Source: Diplonema japonicum
Taxonomy: Eukaryota; Protista; Euglenozoa: Diplonemea
DNA length: 64,000 nucleotides
Assembly (NCBI GenBank): GCA_964019335.1
Contig: OZ025731.1
Span: forward strand, 365,545-429,544
Direction: 5' to 3'
The position numbers and the translations under genes are program-made. The notes below the pieces were generated by a model that was not told the origin of the DNA, searched no databases, and was given only the letters and a program-made list of their open reading frames with translations. How positions within the stretch are numbered: the first letter of the stretch is position 1; each line of letters begins with the position of its first letter. Shown in pieces: positions 55,437 to 64,000 of the stretch.

Positions 55437-56284
55437 ATAGATATGTTTACTTTGTTTCAAACTTGCTACTTTATAGATACCTTAGTTTAACACATCGAGC
55501 GGGGTGGTTGTGTGCCTCCTTTGTATGCCCTGCTCGCATGTGGTGTTGTTATTTTTAGTCTTAGCTCCCACGAGCTTCCAGTTTTTTGTGCTGCTGCTGG
55601 CGACTACTGTTATTGAAACAGCATGACAGGTCGGTCGTTTGTAAAATGTTATGGATAAAATGAAGCCGAAGGAAGCTCGAGACTAGCAGTCGGGAATAAG
55701 TGAGAAAGGTGCATGAGTGTTTGATAGAAACGAACACCAAAGGGGGACAAAGCGACTTGTGCAAGTAAATTGAATCCAAAATATCAACGTTCTTCCGTTA
55801 GGAGGTGACTCTCCCCTTGGATGAGGCAAACACACTGGTCTGCTCCTGGGAACAGTGTGACGAAGCAAGCAGGGGAGTGGACCCTTGTGTCAGACGGAAC
55901 GAGTTACGATGGGGTGTCGGTGAAGGTGGTGCCCAAACCTCGGGTTCTGGGCAGAGTCGTGCTCCCCCGGGTCCCAGTGCATGAGCATTCTGGTGTCATC
56001 GTGAAAATGAAAGATATTTTACAGGTAGAGGATGAGAACAAGGGGGCGTCTCACAAAGACTTCCTTTAACTCATATATTTGTTTTGCACAGCCGTGTTTC
56101 ACACGGGAAACCAAACACCAAGCCTTTGGAACATGCATGCACGTTGTCAGTTACCATGGTGCGGTTGTTAACGCTGCTTCCTCCCTGCTTTCAATTTTTT
56201 TTTCCACCTCTTTTTTTATGGTCATTTTATTTTCACTTGCATCACCGTTTACAACTGGGCATCTTCTCATCTTAGTTCTGAGCT

Positions 56285-56352
56285 ATAGGAAGATGTGAAA
56301 CATTTGTTTTTTTTTTCTGAAAAAAAAAGGGAAAAATAAAAGAATAGGGAAC
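56285..56352. repeat. Left copy of ~70-bp direct repeat flanking the CRE element
   Basis: ATAGGAAGATGTGAAAC..TTTCTGA..GGGAAAAATAAAAGAATAGGGAAC, repeated at 63318-63390. Confidence 0.85.
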
Positions 56353-56917
56353 TTCCCTTCCCTTTTTTTTTTTTTCCGCACCCAAAAGGGGTGCCAAAAT
56401 GGGGCTGGACGGACGCAGATGCCTACAGGGGGTTTTTGTAAGTTTGAAAACCGAAAATTCCGGATGCAAATTTGGCTCCGCGGTGTTCTTGGTGTTCAGG
56501 CTCCCTGTCTGCCAGGGCTGGCCCATGGCTGTTTTCACCGCCTTCTTTGGGGCCGTAGGTCTTTCAATTACTCCCTAAACTCCTTCTCCTTGGCTTTTTT
56601 TCTTGGCGTCCGCCGTAAAAATGGTGATATTTTGATAAACGAGAGAGGTATGTATGGGGAAAAAGTGCATGCTCAGTGTTGGGGGGGGGTCCGGAATAGT
56701 GATTTTATCCGCCTCTTTTCACCCATGGGACGGAAAAGCCCCCGCCTTGCCGATCGCGATGGAAGACACGGTTTATGGTTCCCATGCCCCCCACCGGATC
56801 GTCTTCTACTCCTCTTTTCACTTTTTTTATTTTTTTACTAGTAAATTAAAACTTCTCTAACAAGGCGGGAGAAAAAAAAAATCTGGCATGCACAATGCCT
56901 CATTCGAGGGCACCCTC

Positions 56918-56956
56918 TTCCAACGATTCTAAAGCTACAGTTTCTGTACTTTATTG
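56918..56956 (+). other. Spliced-leader exon sequence (37 of 39 nt; first two positions TT rather than AA)
   Basis: CCAACGATTCTAAAGCTACAGTTTCTGTACTTTATTG. The 3' half matches the conserved kinetoplastid/diplonemid SL end CAGTTTCTGTACTTTATTG; followed by GT. Confidence 0.92.
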
Positions 56957-57324
56957 GTCGTTCGTGTTCTGCTGGTGCCTGCCGCCTCTGCCTGGGTTTG
57001 CCGCTGCGTCCGTCGTCCGTCGTCGCCGTCGTCCGGGGGGGTTGTTTTGCCCGTCGGCCTGCCCGCCGCTCAACGAAAGGATCCCCTCCCCCCCATCACA
57101 CACTATAAAACAAAAAAAAAAATGGATCCAAGACGACTCGCAGGAGGAGGTGACCGCAGCCGCAGCCCGCAGGAGCAAGCCCGCAGCCCGCAGTGCACGG
57201 CACCGAGACCCACCCAACCAGGCAATCTGGTTGGGCAGTATGAATCCCCACCCCCTAGATCCCCCCACCCCCCTTTAGAAAAAAAAAATAATAAAAAAAA
57301 AAATCACAAGTAGAGACCGCGGTT

Positions 57325-58569
57325 TTGACCGCCACAACCAAGGGAGCAGCAGCCCCTGCTACAGCCACGGCCGCCCCGGCCGCAAGCACGACTGCTGCAG
57401 CAGCCCCAGCCGCACTGAACGCCGCAGCCGACCCTGCCGCCCCAAACGCCGCAGCCGCCCCTGCCGCAGCCACGACCGACACAACCACGATCGCCGCAGC
57501 CGCCCCTGCCGCCTTGAACGCTGCAGCCGCCCCTGCCGCAACTGAGACAGCCGCAGCCGCCCCTGCCGCAAGCCCGACCTCCGCAGCCGACCCTGCCATA
57601 GTTGAAGAGGAAAAAAAAAAGAAGAAAAAGGGGGAAGGGTGGATACTGAAAGATGGTGAGCACCCCCCCGGGTTGAAGACAGGTGCTGCCCCCGCCTTCC
57701 CAGAAGCTCTGCTGTCCGGGAAGTGGGAGGCCCTGTCAGGGAACACGGGGAGGGAGACGCTCCAGCATGGGCACCGGTGGGAGGGGACGGACGCCGAGGT
57801 GCGCCCCACCACCGGCATCCCAGGGGAGGCAAAGGGGTGGGTGAGGGAGGTGGCCGCCGCCGCAGGGCTCAAGGTGGTCCCCAACCAGGTACTTGTGAAT
57901 AAGTACAGACCTGGTTGTGGGATTGCCGCCCACAAGGACGACGCAAGACTGGGACCGGTCGTCCTAGTCTTGTCGTACGGGGCTGAGACCACAATGGTCA
58001 TGAGGAAGGGGGACAGGGTAGCGAGGTACCTGGTGCCCCCCTTCTCATGGGCACTGTTGGAAGGCGAAGCGAGACACCAGTGGACACACCACATCCCGTC
58101 AGGGGTGTCCACTGGTGTCAGGGTGTCGATCACCCTGCGTGCGGTTGGCCCCGAGCTCACCCACATACCCCCCCAGGAAGACCCACCCCCTGGGCTAACA
58201 AACGAACCCCCCCCTTTTTTTTTAGAACCCTCCACGGAGGTAAAAAACAGACCCTCTTCGGAGGAAAATGGAGAGAGAGGGGAAGAGGCAGCGCTCCCAA
58301 AAGAGGGTAGTGTTCCTCCCCCCCATTTGTCCCCCCCTTTTTCATTTTTAGAGCCCTCTTTGCCTGGTGTGCAGGGGCTGTGTGTGGAAGGGTCAGGGGT
58401 GCCACGACGAGTGCAAAAAGGCGGTGCGAAGGGAAGGGGAATACACGACCCCCCCGCCGGCCCCGACGAGGACCGAGTTACCCAGCCTGGAAACCATAGC
58501 CGCCATGAACGTCACGACCATGGGGTCGATCCCGACGAGCCTTCAAAGACTGTGGGGGCTTACCCTTAA
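57325..58569 (+). CDS. Retroelement ORF with Ala/Pro tandem repeats and AlkB-type 2OG-Fe(II) dioxygenase domain (probable true ATG at 57122, out of frame)
   Basis: NQVLVNKY.PGCGIAAHKD (NxY, HxD), LSYG, EARHQWTHHIP (H), RVSITLR (R..R) at ~57880-58140. Confidence 0.85.
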   Translation: MTATTKGAAAPATATAAPAASTTAAAAPAALNAAADPAAPNAAAAPAAATTDTTTIAAAAPAALNAAAAPAATETAAAAPAASPTSAADPAIVEEEKKKKKKGEGWILKDGEHPPGLKTGAAPAFPEALLSGKWEALSGNTGRETLQHGHRWEGTDAEVRPTTGIPGEAKGWVREVAAAAGLKVVPNQVLVNKYRPGCGIAAHKDDARLGPVVLVLSYGAETTMVMRKGDRVARYLVPPFSWALLEGEARHQWTHHIPSGVSTGVRVSITLRAVGPELTHIPPQEDPPPGLTNEPPPFFLEPSTEVKNRPSSEENGERGEEAALPKEGSVPPPHLSPPFSFLEPSLPGVQGLCVEGSGVPRRVQKGGAKGRGIHDPPAGPDEDRVTQPGNHSRHERHDHGVDPDEPSKTVGAYP

Positions 58570-61500
58570 GCACACTCTGGGCCGAGCGGTGAAGGACAAC
58601 ACAGAGGAGGCTTGGCTGCTGGTGGCGATGCTCCCCAAAGCCTGCCTGTGGAAGAAGAGGGGAGGGAAGAAGCGGGACAAGGAGACGGAGCTGAGTGTCC
58701 AGGCCAGATTGGAGGAGTGGGAGAAGGGAAATTACATGGCCCTCTGGAATAAGCTGGAATCAGGTGAGAAGGGGGAACCTAAGAACGACGAGGTCTCTAA
58801 GGTCGCCAGGGCCACGGAACTGTGCAGCAAAGGGAGGTTCTCGGCAGGAAACGCGGCGCTTGTAGCCCAGGGGCTGGCGGAAGACAATGAGGATTGCTGG
58901 AGAGCGCTGCAGAGCAAACATCCAGAGCCACTACACCCCCAATGGGACAACCCGGCGAAGACGAAGGAAGCGGTAGAAGTCTTGCCAGAAGAAGTGCTGG
59001 ACGCAATCAGGGACTTCCCGAGGGGGACTGCTGCGGGACCGACTGGTCTGAGAGCCCAGCACATCAAGGACGCGGTGGACGGAGCTTTTGAGTCTCAAGG
59101 CTGTTTGATGTCGGTGACGAGGGCAGTCAACGCATTAGCTAGAGGCACGGCCCCTAGGGAGGTGGCTCCGCTGATGGCAGGGGCGAACCTTGTGGCCCTC
59201 AAGAAGAACGACAGGGACGTGCGGCCCATAGCCGTTGGGGATGTGCTGCGTCGGCTGGTGGGGAAATCCCTTGTGAAGAAGATCGCTCCGGAAGTGGCCT
59301 CTTCGTACCTGAAGAAAGGCGGCCAGGTGGGGGTATCGGTCCCTGCTGGAATGGAGGCGGCTATACACACCATCAGGCAGTATGTGGACAGGGAACGGGG
59401 CAACAAGCAGGAAAACAAGGTGATCCTCAAGATCGACTACGCCAACGCCTTCAACAGTGTTTGTCGGAGGCAGCTGTGCTCACAGGCCTATGAGCAAGCG
59501 TCGGGGCTGTATGCGTGGGCCGATTGGTGCTACAGGGTGCCCTCCCAATTATACTACAACGGAAAGGTGATTAAGTCCCAGGAAGGGGTGCAACAGGGGG
59601 ACCCGATGGGACCGCTGCTGTTCTCTCTGGCCATCCAACCCCTGGTGAACAAGATAAGTGAAGACTGCAACCTGGACATCCTCCAGTTCTACCTGGACGA
59701 TGGCGTCCTTGTGGGGAATGTGGATGAAGTGAGAAAGGCGTACAACATCTTGTGTGAGCTGAGCGGAATGATAGGGCTGAAAGTGAAACCCCAGAAGTGC
59801 GAGCTCATATGGGTTAGTGGCGACCTCCCCCAGACAGTGGAGGACACAGGCTTCGATGGCCTGACAGAAGAGAATTTCCACAAAGAGAGGAACTTCATGC
59901 TCCTGGGGGCGCCGATAGGATCGCCGGAGTACACGCAAGCCTTTCTGAACAAACGCTTGGACGCGCTGGAAGAGAACTTCGACATGCTGACCAAGGTGGG
60001 GAGGCAGACAGGGTACACACTTCTCCGGTATTGCAGCTCATACAGCAAACTGGTGTTTTACATGAGAGTGGTCCCAGACTCGCATGTGGGAGGGGTCATG
60101 CACAGGTTCGACGAGATGGTGCGGAAGACGATGTCGAAGGTGTGCGGCATGCAGTTCGAGAACGGGTCGAAAGAATGGCAGCAGGCGAAACTGTCCGTAA
60201 AAGTCGGTGGGCTTGGGATGAGGAGCTGCCAGGAGCACCTGCGCGCGGCCAACATGGCTTCGAGGGCGTCGACGATGAAGCTGTGCAAGGAGCTGGATCC
60301 CAAATACGAACATGGGCTGGAAGGGGGTGTATGGGGGAGCTGGCTCGAGTGGTTCAACAGGACGAAGGGCGGCATGCAGATTACACCCGACATGGTGGCC
60401 AAGGCCCCCCACATCTGCAGCCAGAGGTGGCTCTCTAGGGTGCTTGATGAGAAGGCGCTGGAGGACCTCTTGGCGAAAGCAGATGCACGCTCGAGAGCGA
60501 GGTTGATGTCGGAGTCAATGCACTATGCGGGGGCGTGGTTGACGGCGACGCCTGACTTCTACAACCAGCTGTCGGACAACGAGTTTGGGGCTCTGATCAA
60601 GTGGTGGTTGGGGGCTCCGGTCTACAAGCAGGGTGAGAGCTGCCACGACCCGAGGTGCAAGACTGAGGGGATGGACGTATGGGGTGACCATGCCCAGGGA
60701 TGCGGCAACGCCAGGATTGCGAGGCACGACCGGGTGAAGGAGACCATCCACAGACACTGTCAGTGGGCCGGGGTGAGCGCAACGATGGAGAAGACGGGGC
60801 TGATCCCGGGGTCGTCCCAGCGCCCGGCGGACGTGTTCTTCCCAGGTGGGGTGGGGGGTTCCCGCCCAATGGCTATGGACGTGGTCATCGTGCACCCGAG
60901 GAACGAGTCTTGTGTCAACCAGGCGGCGAAGACTGCGGGGTACGCAGCGGCGAAGGCGGAACACTACAAGCGCCAGAAGTATGAGGCGGAGCTCGCCAAG
61001 ACACGCGTGGCCTTTGTACCTTTCGCGATGGAGACCTTTGGGGGGTTCGGGGAGGCAGCAGTCTACCTCACGAAGAAACTGTCCAGGAGCATAGCTGCGC
61101 GGGCTCACGGGGACAGAGTCTCGATACACAGGCGTGTGGTCCAAGAGGTGTCAACGGCCATGATGAGATCGATAGCAGGGGCGCTGTTAGTCAAAGGGCC
61201 TGTACAGTTGGATCCAGGGCCCCCGGTACCGGACGGCGAAGAGGAAAAAAAGGACAACGAGGAAGCGAACAACGAACCCAACACTGAATCCAACACTGAC
61301 CTCACAGAGGACTCCTTCGGCAATGAAAAAACCACCGAAGCTGAGGAGTCGTCCGAGAGGGAAGTGAAGGGACAGGGAGGCGGACCCCCAATCACGGTGG
61401 CCCACCAGCTGGATGCCCTTCTGGAGCAGACGAAGAAGGACCTGGACGCCCGAATGCAGCAGCAGCGAAAGGCGGAACCGGTGGAGGGTGGAACACAAGG

Positions 61501-63277
61501 GAAAGCGGGAGCAGGACTCGAAGCAGCCTCGCCGGGAGGAGAAGACACGGAGATGGCCGGAACAGGATCCAGCGAGAGGGCTGGGCAGGGAGGGGAGCTT
61601 GACCCGAAGGCCCAGGAAGATGGGAAGAGACAAGGGGCGACTGACGCTGCGGTGAACCAGACCTTGGACCAGTGTCCTAAGGGGGATACGGAGGCCCAGA
61701 GGGACTCGAACAAGGGGGACCAGAGTGCGACAACTGCTACGAGGAAGATGACCGTGAGCGAATTCTGTAGGGAACAAGCTGCGAAGAGACAGGGCGGTGG
61801 GAGGACTCTGAAGCCGCAGGCGGATGACGCCCCCGAAGGGACCAAAGAGGGCGGGAACGCACCGAGCGGAGGCAGCCAGTCGGGGCCTGACACACCTAGG
61901 GGTGGGATCCAGACGCCGGAGGGAGATCAGCTGATGGGAGTCGGGGCACCGGAAAGGGAACAGCAGGTGGAAGTAGGGGGAGACTTCGTTCAGCTTGACC
62001 CGATTGATGTGGTGATGGGCATCCCAATTCCGAGAGCGATGGTGCCACTGAGGGCGAGGCCGGGGGACCGACTGCTCAAGTTCATCATCCAGTTCGAGGG
62101 CCGGGTGGAGATCATCCTTGAAGAAGGAACGGACCCTGGAAGGGAGAGGACTGAGGAGATGCTTCTTGCGAAGGCCGAGTCGCTGGGTGTTCCACTGGAG
62201 GTGGCTATGGCTGGCCAGATTGGTATCGCTGGACTTGGATACATGATGGTAAAGCAGTACTTCGCAAGCTTGGAAGGTGGGTCGGACGGAGAGCGCCGCA
62301 GCCGCATTGTGGGTTGTGAGGTGCAGAAGTCGGAAACATACCGCGAGTTCGAGTTCCCGAGGACGGTCCAGGATTTCCAGATCACGTACGCGTGTGGGTG
62401 TTCGGCGGTGCAACCTGTTCGTTTCAAGGGTGGCGTGCTCAAGGGGACTCTGGAAACGGCATGGAGGGTGGTCAAGTTGCAGACCCGGGGGTGCAGACAC
62501 CACCCAACACCGGGGAAGGAAGGGGTAGTGGGCATTGCGGCGGGAGCCGGCGCTACCAAGGTGACACTACGTGAGTTCTTGGAGAGGTGCGACGCAAGGA
62601 TAAGGGCCCCAGTGGGAAAGGTCAAGGACCTGATCAAAGTGAAGGCGTGGGTGAGGGATGGAAGGAAGGTCACCCTCGACGTCTACGAGGGGAGGGGGCC
62701 CTGCGAGAAGGAGACGAGGCGCACTGTCCAGGACCATCTGCGGAAGATGGGTGTTGAAGAGGTCGACCTGCAGTCAGCGGTGGTGACGGTCCCGGGGTTG
62801 TTCGAGGACGTCTCCTTTGAGAGGTACCTTGGGCTGTTGGCCCGGAAGAAGGAGGAAGACAGGGAGAGGCGGCCTGAGGTGGTTGCCACGGACCTCCCCA
62901 CCCTGGAAGAGCTGAAGTGGAGCAAGAAGGACAAGAAGCGGGCCCGGGCCCGATCGGCCAGTACTGACTCGGATTGTGTGGAGGGTGGCTACATCTATCT
63001 GAAGGGTACGGGGGCGGATGGCACCGTGGTCGAAGCCAACATATGCAGGGGTGAGCTCAAGGGGATGACCGGGCCCCAGTTCAAGTTCTTGGCGGAGCAC
63101 AGGTTGATGGAAGAGCTGGGGAGCGACGACCTGGTGCGGGACACGGTCAAGGTGCGCAACAAGGAGAACTGGGCCCCGGTGAACAGTGCGGTGGCTTGGC
63201 TGCAGCTCGAGTCGGGGAGGGCACGGGTGGGGCCCATACCCCACAAGAAGAGGTCCAAAGGCTCGCTGGCCAGATAG
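58352..63277 (+). CDS. CRE-type polyprotein: Cys-rich finger, RT, CCHC, REL endonuclease, ~690-aa C-terminal extension
   Basis: AAGPTGLR, RPIAVGDVLRRL, DYANAFN, GVQQGDPMGP, YLDD, GGLG; C..C..DHAQGC, RHD, RPAD, D, KRQKY, ETFG. Open for more than 1600 codons. Confidence 0.95.
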   Translation, partial: SPLCLVCRGCVWKGQGCHDECKKAVRREGEYTTPPPAPTRTELPSLETIAAMNVTTMGSIPTSLQRLWGLTLKHTLGRAVKDNTEEAWLLVAMLPKACLWKKRGGKKRDKETELSVQARLEEWEKGNYMALWNKLESGEKGEPKNDEVSKVARATELCSKGRFSAGNAALVAQGLAEDNEDCWRALQSKHPEPLHPQWDNPAKTKEAVEVLPEEVLDAIRDFPRGTAAGPTGLRAQHIKDAVDGAFESQGCLMSVTRAVNALARGTAPREVAPLMAGANLVALKKNDRDVRPIAVGDVLRRLVGKSLVKKIAPEVASSYLKKGGQVGVSVPAGMEAAIHTIRQYVDRERGNKQENKVILKIDYANAFNSVCRRQLCSQAYEQASGLYAWADWCYRVPSQLYYNGKVIKSQEGVQQGDPMGPLLFSLAIQPLVNKISEDCNLDILQFYLDDGVLVGNVDEVRKAYNILCELSGMIGLKVKPQKCELIWVSGDLPQTVEDTGFDGLTEENFHKERNFMLLGAPIGSPEYTQAFLNKRLDALEENFDMLTKVGRQTGYTLLRYCSSYSKLVFYMRVVPDSHVGGVMHRFDEMVRKTMSKVCGMQFENGSKEWQQAKLSVKVGGLGMRSCQEHLRAANMASRASTMKLCKELDPKYEHGLEGGVWGSWLEWFNRTKGGMQITPDMVAKAPHICSQRWLSRVLDEKALEDLLAKADARSRARLMSESMHYAGAWLTATPDFYNQLSDNEFGALIKWWLGAPVYKQGESCHDPRCKTEGMDVWGDHAQGCGNARIARHDRVKETIHRHCQWAGVSATMEKTGLIPGSSQRPADVFFPGGVGGSRPMAMDVVIVHPRNESCVNQAAKTAGYAAAKAEHYKRQKYEAELAKTRVAFVPFAMETFGGFGEAAVYLTKKLSRSIAARAHGDRVSIHRRVVQEVSTAMMRSIAGALLVKGPVQLDPGPPVPDGEEEKKDNEEANNEPNTESNTDLTEDSFGNEKTTEAEESSEREVKGQGGGPPITVAHQLDALLEQTKKDLDARMQQQRKAEPVEGGTQGKAGAGLEAASPGGEDTEMAGTGSSERAGQGGELDPKAQEDGKRQGATDAAVNQTLDQCPKGDTEAQRDSNKGDQSATTATRKMTVSEFCREQAAKRQGGGRTLKPQADDAPEGTKEGGNAPSGGSQSGPDTPRGGIQTPEGDQLMGVGAPEREQQVEVGGDFVQLDPIDVVMGIPIPRAMVPLRARPGDRLLKFIIQFEGRVEIILEEGTDPGRERTEEMLLAKAESLGVPLEVAMAGQIGIAGLGYMMVKQYFASLEGGSDGERRSRIVGCEVQKSETYREFEFPRTVQDFQITYACGCSAVQPVRFKGGVLKGTLETAWRVVKLQTRGCRHHPTPGKEGVVGIAAGAGATKVTLREFLERCDARIRAPVGKVKDLIKVKAWVRDGRKVTLDVYEGRGPCEKETRRTVQDHLRKMGVEEVDLQSAVVTVPGLFEDVSFERYLGLLARKKEEDRERRPEVVATDLPTLEELKWSKKDKKRARARSASTDSDCVEGGYIYLKGTGADGTVVEANICRGELKGMTGPQFKFLAEHRLMEELGSDDLVRDTVKVRNKENWAPVNSAVAWLQLESGRARVGPIPHKKRSKGSLAR

Positions 63278-63317
63278 GCCAGCGGGGGTGTGGGGGGCTG
63301 TTCTCCCCCCCCCCGCC

Positions 63318-63390
63318 ATAAGAAGATGTGAAACTTTTTTTTTTTTTTTCTGAGAAAAAAAAAAAAGGGAAAAATAAAAGAATAGGGAAC
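63318..63390. repeat. Right copy of ~70-bp direct repeat
   Basis: Matches 56285-56352 apart from homopolymer lengths and a few substitutions. Confidence 0.85.
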
Positions 63391-63768
63391 AGGTGCTACA
63401 ACGGCCAGGCTAGATAGAACCACTTAGATTTTTTTTTTTTTTCCTTTTTTTTTTTTTCTTTTTGTTTTTCCTTTTTTTTTTTTTTTTTTTATTTTTCTGT
63501 TTTTCTTTTTCTTTTTCTTTTTGAAGTGGAACCATCTCGGTCGACGTTTTTTTTTTTTTTTTTTTTTTTTTCTTTTTTCTTTTGTGGTGATGTGTTTTTC
63601 CTGTTTTTGATTTTCTTCTTCCCCCGCTCTATGCTTTATCGCATGGACATTGGCCACTCTGCCCCTTTCCCCTTTTTTGATTCTCCCTCTTTCCCCCTCC
63701 TAAATTTTACCCCCTGCCCCACTCATTCCTCCCTAGTATGTTTTTGAATTTGCCTCTTCTTCTTTTAA

Positions 63769-64000
63769 GCAAACCCGCAAACCCGCAAACCCGCAAACCC
63801 GCAAACCCGCAAACCCGCAAACCCGCAAACCCGCAAACCCGCAAACCCGCAAACCCGCAAACCCGCAAACCCGCAAACCCGCAAACCCGCAAACCCGCAA
63901 ACCCGCAAACCCGCAAACCCGCAAACCCGCAAACCCGCAAACCCGCAAACCCGCAAACCCGCAAACCCGCAAACCCGCAAACCCGCAAACCCGCAAACCC
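63769..64000. repeat. Perfect (GCAAACCC)n tandem array, 29 units to the window edge; telomere-like
   Basis: Directly visible; the G-rich strand (TTTGCGGG) is the minus strand. Confidence 0.95.

Follow-up and report, generated by a model that had tools for sequence, protein, structure and literature searches.

How does a retrotransposon come to begin with the spliced leader (SL) of its host? The question is raised by the end of contig OZ025731.1 in the Diplonema japonicum assembly GCA_964019335.1, of which we analysed a stretch of 64,000 nucleotides (nt) that reaches the contig end (positions 365,545 to 429,544 of the forward strand, G000:C84:365545-429544 in our numbering; hereafter the window). 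Within it, positions 56920 to ~63428 read as a single full-length copy of a non-long-terminal-repeat (non-LTR) retrotransposon with an R2-type, restriction-enzyme-like (REL) endonuclease. Its first bases, 56920-56956, are nt 3-39 of the 39-nt SL, which we take to be of the diplonemid type, and they form the sole SL in the window (0 expected by chance). We propose, with a probability of about 0.75, that the host SL reached the element RNA by trans-splicing and that the leader-capped RNA was copied back into DNA.

A preliminary description of the window had listed two direct repeats, a spacer of ~565 base pairs (bp), the SL, an adenine-free leader, an ATG at 57122, an AlkB domain and a reverse transcriptase (RT) with an REL endonuclease, all of which are present. 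It took the SL for internal cargo, a view that did not survive the comparison of copies: the element has the SL as its exact 5′ terminus, and the upstream flanks are unrelated among copies. The genome (62.5 Mb) contains the SL 19-mer 232 times. Copies were compared directly in 65 fetched loci (cited here by handles such as L024, or by contig and position), and the flanks upstream of the SL were read in 30 of them. In these 30 loci the copies differ right up to the SL, and downstream of it the sequence falls into classes. Class A, to which the window copy belongs, has a leader beginning with GTCGTTCG, and class B one beginning with GTCGTCTG; the two are subfamilies of this element.

The SL junction is invariant in both. 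Exact class A leader starts lie behind the 3′ end of the SL in 65 of 65 cases, 63 of them exactly and two with an extra TG between SL and leader (C65:499757 and C71:490300). When a degenerate pattern for class A and B leader starts was used, the same was true of 94 out of 94, a count that comprises the class A/B copies whose leader start fitted the search pattern. In addition, all 40 scored copies match from base 1 of a query starting at 56920. Since the SL is constant at the junction and the sequence upstream of it is variable, the element starts at the SL. In a hand count of 156 of the 208 listed SL 5′ ends (6 of the 156 being true genes), ~79% of the retrocopies begin with nt 2 and 19% with nt 3, while 3% start deeper in the SL. 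The frequency of A at nt 1 does not exceed chance (27%).

Some copies preserve other junctions. In 4 genomic copies the SL is joined directly to GATCCCCT, exactly after the conserved AAAG that closes the adenine-free tract in both subfamilies. A stuttered SL, in which the SL is followed by TTTCTGTACTTTATTG and its last 16 nt are thus repeated, occurs in 7 copies, including class A (C20, C76) and class B (C8, C12); this is the product to be expected if a resident SL copy is trans-spliced at its internal CAG. Most copies of a further, unrelated repeat (~394 copies) are without the SL and have AG ahead of their first base, and in a few the SL is joined exactly there. A parent locus with AG at the junction is thus present for this repeat and for the downstream acceptor AAAG|GATCC (the bar marks the junction), and none was found for class A/B. 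The ~394-copy repeat (L002, L006, L020; L062-L065) begins with GGTGGTGGGGATAACATGG, usually behind AG and often behind CATTCAG; in L020 an open reading frame (ORF) for a GH6 glycoside hydrolase lies downstream.

These observations suggest the following course of events. The capped 5′ end of the element RNA would have been the host SL, and the element RT would have copied this RNA almost to the cap, so that every DNA copy would begin at SL nt 2 or 3, irrespective of the sequence ahead of it. The uniform stop 1-2 bases before the RNA end might reflect a block at a modified cap-adjacent base, as the cap-4 structure of trypanosomatids leads us to infer. Transcripts of resident copies would still be trans-spliced, either at the AG with which the adenine-free leader closes or at the CAG within their own SL, and RNAs of both kinds would likewise be copied into DNA. 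The second of two models in the preliminary description, in which an SL-capped RNA was copied to the cap and fixed in DNA, fits the SL junction, the variant flanks and the splice-junction variants.

Could the SL instead be what is left of an insertion target, as in the CRE clade of trypanosomatids (CRE1/CRE2, SLACS, CZAR)? In such an event, the element would sit inside an SL RNA gene, the SL would be its target and the promoter of the SL gene would drive its transcription. Only 6 SL copies in the assembly share the upstream sequence GGGAGGTTA (L011 and L029, at C4:650 kb and C15:779 kb; C51, C59), and in 9 the intron GTACCCAATC comes after the SL. Of the 6 genes, the 3 that were read, in L011 and L029, contain the true intron, and the SL RNA region of L011 folds as a typical SL RNA (z = -4.7). 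The two SL genes of L029 lie 352 bp apart, beside a 5S rRNA gene. Six genes are few for an organism that trans-splices its mRNA, and the arrays may have been collapsed.

Like the CRE clade, the present element is a euglenozoan non-LTR retrotransposon with two ORFs, an RT followed by CCHC and REL endonuclease motifs, and an association with SL sequence, and its D. papillatum relatives are annotated as SLACS-like. The REL-type endonuclease, the annotation of the 40%-identical D. papillatum homologue and the GT that follows the SL, as in an SL gene, would all suit an insertion of this kind. However, none of the 94 class A/B copies lies behind SL-gene upstream sequence, and a search of the window for the SL found none after the 3′ end of the element, nor does intron sequence follow there. 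The SL is complete rather than split at an internal site, and the leader has nothing in common with the SL intron beyond GT. The element thus differs from the CRE clade in lying outside SL RNA genes, with a complete SL only at its 5′ end and unrelated flanks, as well as in its subtelomeric copies and its ORF1, an AlkB-type oxygenase. The CRE label of the preliminary description fails at the defining target site (none of the 94 in SL genes, differing flanks, one SL in the window), and its statement that the SL is no target-site remnant of an SL RNA gene is borne out: the SL belongs to the element. A CRE-type event is therefore, on these 94 copies, very improbable.

The region upstream of the SL had been offered as the other source of the leader, namely a captured SL promoter of 565 bp carried as cargo between terminal repeats. 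The arrangement of the window copy, and of that copy only, speaks for it. Most of the spacer is an independent repeat of ~533 bp with its own limits, which occurs in at least 40 copies with 89-99% identity and the same limits. It is absent upstream of other copies of the element; where it adjoins SL elements elsewhere, it occurs in either orientation, inverted or cut at differing internal positions (C62 at 202, C76 at 141, C24 at 345 and 15). Its homology ends 24 nt ahead of the SL, and these 24 nt have no other occurrence in the window and the 65 fetched loci, where a target duplication was looked for and not found. When asked whether 56353-56956 is common to the copies, the fetched loci gave 19 distinct class A/B 5′ ends with unrelated flanks, none of them sharing the spacer. 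As the spacer is not common to other copies and is a separate repeat, the captured promoter is refuted.

The direct repeats (56285-56352, 68 bp, and 63318-63390) are not the termini of the element. They are only 88% identical over 76 aligned columns, while family copies are 98-100% alike in this part, and they are therefore not a target duplication; the first is a fragment of the 3′ untranslated region (UTR). In L036 and L054, the ~533-bp repeat likewise stands behind a segment of the family 3′ UTR and the T-tract downstream of it. The first repeat and spacer of the window are a shortened form of this arrangement and represent the tail of a neighbouring unit; they belong to neighbouring units in a head-to-tail subtelomeric chain and lie outside the element. 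Promoter capture is accordingly the least probable reading considered here, and the copy comparison leads us to regard both it and CRE-style insertion as excluded.

Several observations weigh against trans-splicing as the source of the SL on each new copy. A source copy without the SL and with AG|GTCGT was not found in the assembly for either subfamily. The junction is common to two subfamilies that are 0.34 synonymous substitutions per site (dS) apart. Resident copies have TG, not AG, ahead of GTCGT, and a resident copy therefore cannot regenerate SL|GTCGT by canonical trans-splicing. Finally, the SL at the 5′ end of element RNA is deduced from DNA copies; the contigs of two possible RNA runs (Logan) cover ORF2 at low depth with ~5% differences and contain no 5′ ends. 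Trans-splicing is nevertheless, in our view, the probable source of the main SL|GTCGT junction. Two candidates were discarded: the single AG-preceded match (C11:439671, L061) is unrelated sequence and was not accepted as a source copy, and a 22-nt joint of 56956 to 58651 in the RNA-run contigs was judged a low-complexity match in a purine-rich stretch.

Three explanations of how the SL is renewed remain, namely source copies absent from the assembly, re-use of the resident SL by internal initiation, and a homology-guided finish of the cDNA on another SL-bearing RNA. The 5′ ends are not eroded, which favours a fresh SL in each cycle; no source copy was found, which favours re-use of the resident one. 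After a single capture, the SL and the adenine-free, GT-rich leader might have become a permanent 5′ module with an internal promoter at the resident SL, as in many long interspersed nuclear elements. No trans-splicing would then be needed, and the SL|GT...AG leader could be removed in cis. In favour of this, the SL heads all 94 copies and is replaced by an AG acceptor in none of them, the SL junction is older than the A/B split, and an adenine-free tract (93-115 nt), a stem closing the SL and the GT...AG borders are found at the leader, the first two conserved in both subfamilies. On the other hand, the lack of 5′ erosion and the start of most copies at nt 2 agree better with a fresh capped SL in each cycle. 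The sequence upstream is random, whereas SL genes have a conserved upstream sequence of their own, and evidence for a promoter is lacking. The first bases of the leader pair with the 5′ part of the SL; a consensus fold of 9 class A and B leaders recovered nothing except the SL hairpin with the 6-bp stem that closes it, covariation being absent, and the whole leader folds no better than shuffled sequences (z = 0.09). A scan of 56200-57400 against Rfam (E<=10) gave no ribozyme, SL RNA or other credible family. A 5′ module that sets the RNA start whatever the flank is known from L1Tc, with its Pr77 internal promoter and HDV (hepatitis delta virus)-like ribozyme (PMC3383444), and would solve the problem of renewal here; the present region differs from it in matching no ribozyme family and offering no promoter evidence. 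We consider a permanent module of this kind possible, with the odds clearly against it.

The resident SL might also act through homology. If a read-through RNA served as the template, the RT, on reaching the resident SL, could jump to another SL-bearing RNA, be it any mRNA or the SL RNA, and end at its cap. An exact SL end would then be restored with neither AG nor promoter being required. The RT is R2-like, and the R2 RT is known for template jumping. Of the 9 copies of SL plus intron, 3 lack the gene upstream sequence (L004 at C2:150582, C30:484543 and C107:8888). In L004 the whole unspliced SL RNA (exon and ~84 nt of intron) is fused end-to-end to a unit with a 493-amino-acid ORF of no known family, a chimera of the template-switch type; template switching does take place in this genome. 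L024 (C11:820954-821093) has a composite 5′ end, in which a class B SL with 45 nt of leader is joined to a class A SL. The same 493-amino-acid-ORF unit stands behind a T-tract and CAG in L042. The L004 fusion resembles U6/L1-type chimeric retrocopies, as do C30 and C107 with their SL and intron; this likeness is confined to a few other units and does not extend to the head of the present family, which consists of the SL exon only. Renewal by template switching is purely inferential, and it would require a very high efficiency. We think it unlikely.

A broader version joins these two routes. In it, the SL and its adenine-free GT...AG leader would form a heritable, DNA-encoded 5′ module that yields SL-headed RNA either by internal initiation or by an SL-homology-guided cDNA finish, AlkB would clear cap-adjacent or internal base methylations, and the whole would be a self-leadered system building outward-pointing chains at chromosome ends. 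This we hold only tentatively, below trans-splicing followed by reverse transcription.

The features of the window copy are collected in Table 1. The adenine-free run of 118 nt at its 5′ end (56954-57071) is the longest on the plus strand of the window. Both subfamilies share a conserved ATG at 57122; in the window copy it is off-frame relative to the AlkB ORF, with stops at 57289 in the AlkB frame and at 57311 in the ATG frame, both inside an A-rich run. A class B copy in L048 is open across the 57122-57313 region. Beyond the 3′ UTR follows a T-tract of variable length, after which the copies diverge. Four loci (L044, L046, L048, L060) contain internally deleted short derivatives, in which the SL and leader (to ~57090-57510) are joined to the last ~800 bp (from ~62930-62985). 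These are possibly non-autonomous members of the family.

Table 1. Features of the SL-headed retrotransposon copy and its surroundings (positions in the window).
Feature	Positions	Strand	Basis or remark
First direct repeat	56285..56352	+	Homologous to family 3′ UTR; remnant of a neighbouring upstream unit, outside the element
Independent ~533-bp subtelomeric repeat (the earlier "spacer")	56363..56895	+	Preceded by a T-tract; at least 40 copies with identical limits
Unique flank directly upstream of the element	56896..56919	+	No second occurrence in the window or the 65 fetched loci
SL nt 3-39, 5′ end of the element	56920..56956	+	Copy comparison
Leader with GT...AG borders	56957..57079	+	Adenine-free to 57071; ends in the trans-splice acceptor AAAG|GATCC, which is conserved
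ORF1 start codon (conserved) and N-terminal part	57122..57313	+	Severed from the AlkB frame in the window copy
ORF1: Ala/Pro-rich region, then AlkB-like 2OG-Fe(II) (2-oxoglutarate- and iron-dependent) oxygenase domain (~57736-58140)	57325..58569	+	Pfam, PDB, motifs
ORF2: RT (~59201-59812), CCHC and PD-(D/E)xK-type endonuclease (~60635-60991), C-terminal extension	58367..63277	+	
3′ UTR including second direct repeat (63318-63390)	63278..63428	+	Full length in at least 40 copies, 98-100% identity
T-rich tract and downstream sequence common to many other chromosome ends	63429..63768	+	Possibly part of the element
Terminal (CAAACCCG)n array at the contig end	63769..64000	+	Apparently added at a break point; other copies run on with shared sequence

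The AlkB assignment of the preliminary description is correct. ORF1 matches the Pfam family 2OG-FeII_Oxy_2 (PF13532, E=3e-14), the best PDB match of its AlkB domain is ALKBH8 (E=3e-9), and the motifs HKD, H and RVSITLR correspond to the HxD...H iron triad and the RxSxTxR 2-oxoglutarate motif. A word-based search with ORF1 gave no match, and an exhaustive search yielded relatives of at most ~48% identity. Between class A and class B, the domain is 90% identical at the protein level, with a ratio of nonsynonymous to synonymous substitution rates (dN/dS) of 0.15 over 166 codons, and is under purifying selection. ORF1 is predicted to be a conserved AlkB-type demethylase and would act on element RNA, where it might, for example, take off methyl groups from bases at which these either stall the RT or serve as marks. 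Ty3/Gypsy elements of orchids have an AlkB domain (PMC9289625), and plant RNA viruses carry one as well. These are likewise RNA-copying mobile elements with an AlkB-type demethylase of their own; here, in contrast, the element is non-LTR, and the domain is its ORF1, conserved between the subfamilies as well as in another diplonemid species. Our literature search found no report of an AlkB domain in a non-LTR element.

ORF2 matches RVT_1 in Pfam (E=1e-16), and its best solved relatives are R2 proteins. Downstream of the RT, at residues ~757-875, lie CCHC and the endonuclease motifs RHD..PADV..D..K, which align with those of homologues from D. papillatum. A C-terminal extension of ~700 amino acids follows (61200-63277, residues ~950-1636) and contains no known domain. 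It consists of an acidic low-complexity part and a region of ~400 amino acids without a Pfam match, and cannot be aligned with the D. papillatum homologue. The D. papillatum proteins, e.g. KAJ9442719.1, were named "Retrotransposable element SLACS 132 kDa protein" by their depositors; they carry 2OG-FeII_Oxy_2, a weak match to OTU (protease) upstream of the RT, and RVT_1, and across the RT and endonuclease (753 residues) the homologue compared and ORF2 have 40% identity. As the combination of AlkB, RT and endonuclease recurs in D. papillatum, this layout is common to diplonemids. An affinity of the RT to SLACS is suggested only by the depositors' annotation of this homologue.

Copies of the family cluster near contig ends and point outward. 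Among the full-length matches to the 3′ end on the minus strand, 21 out of 22 lie within 11 kb of the left end of a contig; those on the plus strand lie at high coordinates, near the contig end wherever that end is known. In the window, the upstream genes are on the same strand. In its place at chromosome ends the family resembles telomere-associated non-LTR elements (GilM/GilT of Giardia, SART1/TRAS1 of Bombyx, HeT-A/TART of Drosophila), which occupy chromosome ends in a fixed orientation and in head-to-tail runs, and some of its copies also directly abut telomere-type repeats: 7 SLs, 5 of them class A, stand directly behind (CCCGCAAA)n in the same orientation. The present elements differ from those in their SL-headed 5′ ends; compared with HeT-A/TART, their sense strand runs outward, i.e. 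in the opposite direction. Most copies have flanks other than the terminal repeat. No fixed 3′ junction with the terminal repeat was found among the copies.

In most copies, shared sequence continues beyond 63768, where the terminal repeat starts in the window. The repeat starts at differing points of the shared subtelomeric sequence (63768/63769 in the window; L005, L046, L051), a pattern that looks like repeat addition at breaks. Left contig ends begin with GCGGGTTT and right ends finish with CCCGCAAA. The C-rich strand of the terminal repeats (CAAACCCG)n runs 5′ to 3′ toward the chromosome end (63769-64000 in the window; L012, L024, L038, L056, L058), a polarity opposite to the normal arrangement, in which the 3′ strand is G-rich. 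No TTAGGG array was found in the genome, and a literature search on the 8-mer terminal repeat returned nothing relevant. Short interstitial tracts of the repeat occur between units, as in L014 and in run X3, where a joint leads from 60212 through AAACCCG to 56920. Two tandem arrays were also noted, one with a period of 6,021 bp and class A 3′ ends (C99:347207/353228/359249) and one with a period of 10,659 bp that combines class B with the 533-bp repeat (C24:7178/17837/28496). The genome note for D. japonicum YPF1604 (62.3 Mb, 118 pseudomolecules) contains nothing on repeats, telomeres or the SL (PMC13598402).

SL relics on retrocopies are already known from dinoflagellates, whose retrogenes tagged with relics of the DinoSL have been described as "recycled cDNAs" (PMC6050394, PMC5585692). 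As here, a DNA-encoded SL stands at the 5′ end of the retrocopy behind unrelated upstream sequence, and stuttered or truncated relics arise by renewed trans-splicing at an AG within the resident SL. The present case differs in its euglenozoan host and in that the tagged sequences include an autonomous retrotransposon, whose pattern-matched class A/B copies are all headed by the SL, with no SL-less parent found. Our literature search returned no report of SL-tagged retrocopies in Euglenozoa, and none of an autonomous element in which every pattern-matched copy is SL-headed.

How can the precise SL end be restored when no AG acceptor stands ahead of the leader? The family opens this question to testing. 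It also brings an AlkB demethylase into the domain repertoire of non-LTR elements, and the predicted activity would tie RNA methylation, possibly that of the hypermethylated euglenozoan cap, to reverse transcription. Finally, the family accounts for much of the subtelomeres in this genome, where the strand polarity of the terminal repeats is unusual, and is therefore relevant to the construction of chromosome ends in diplonemids.

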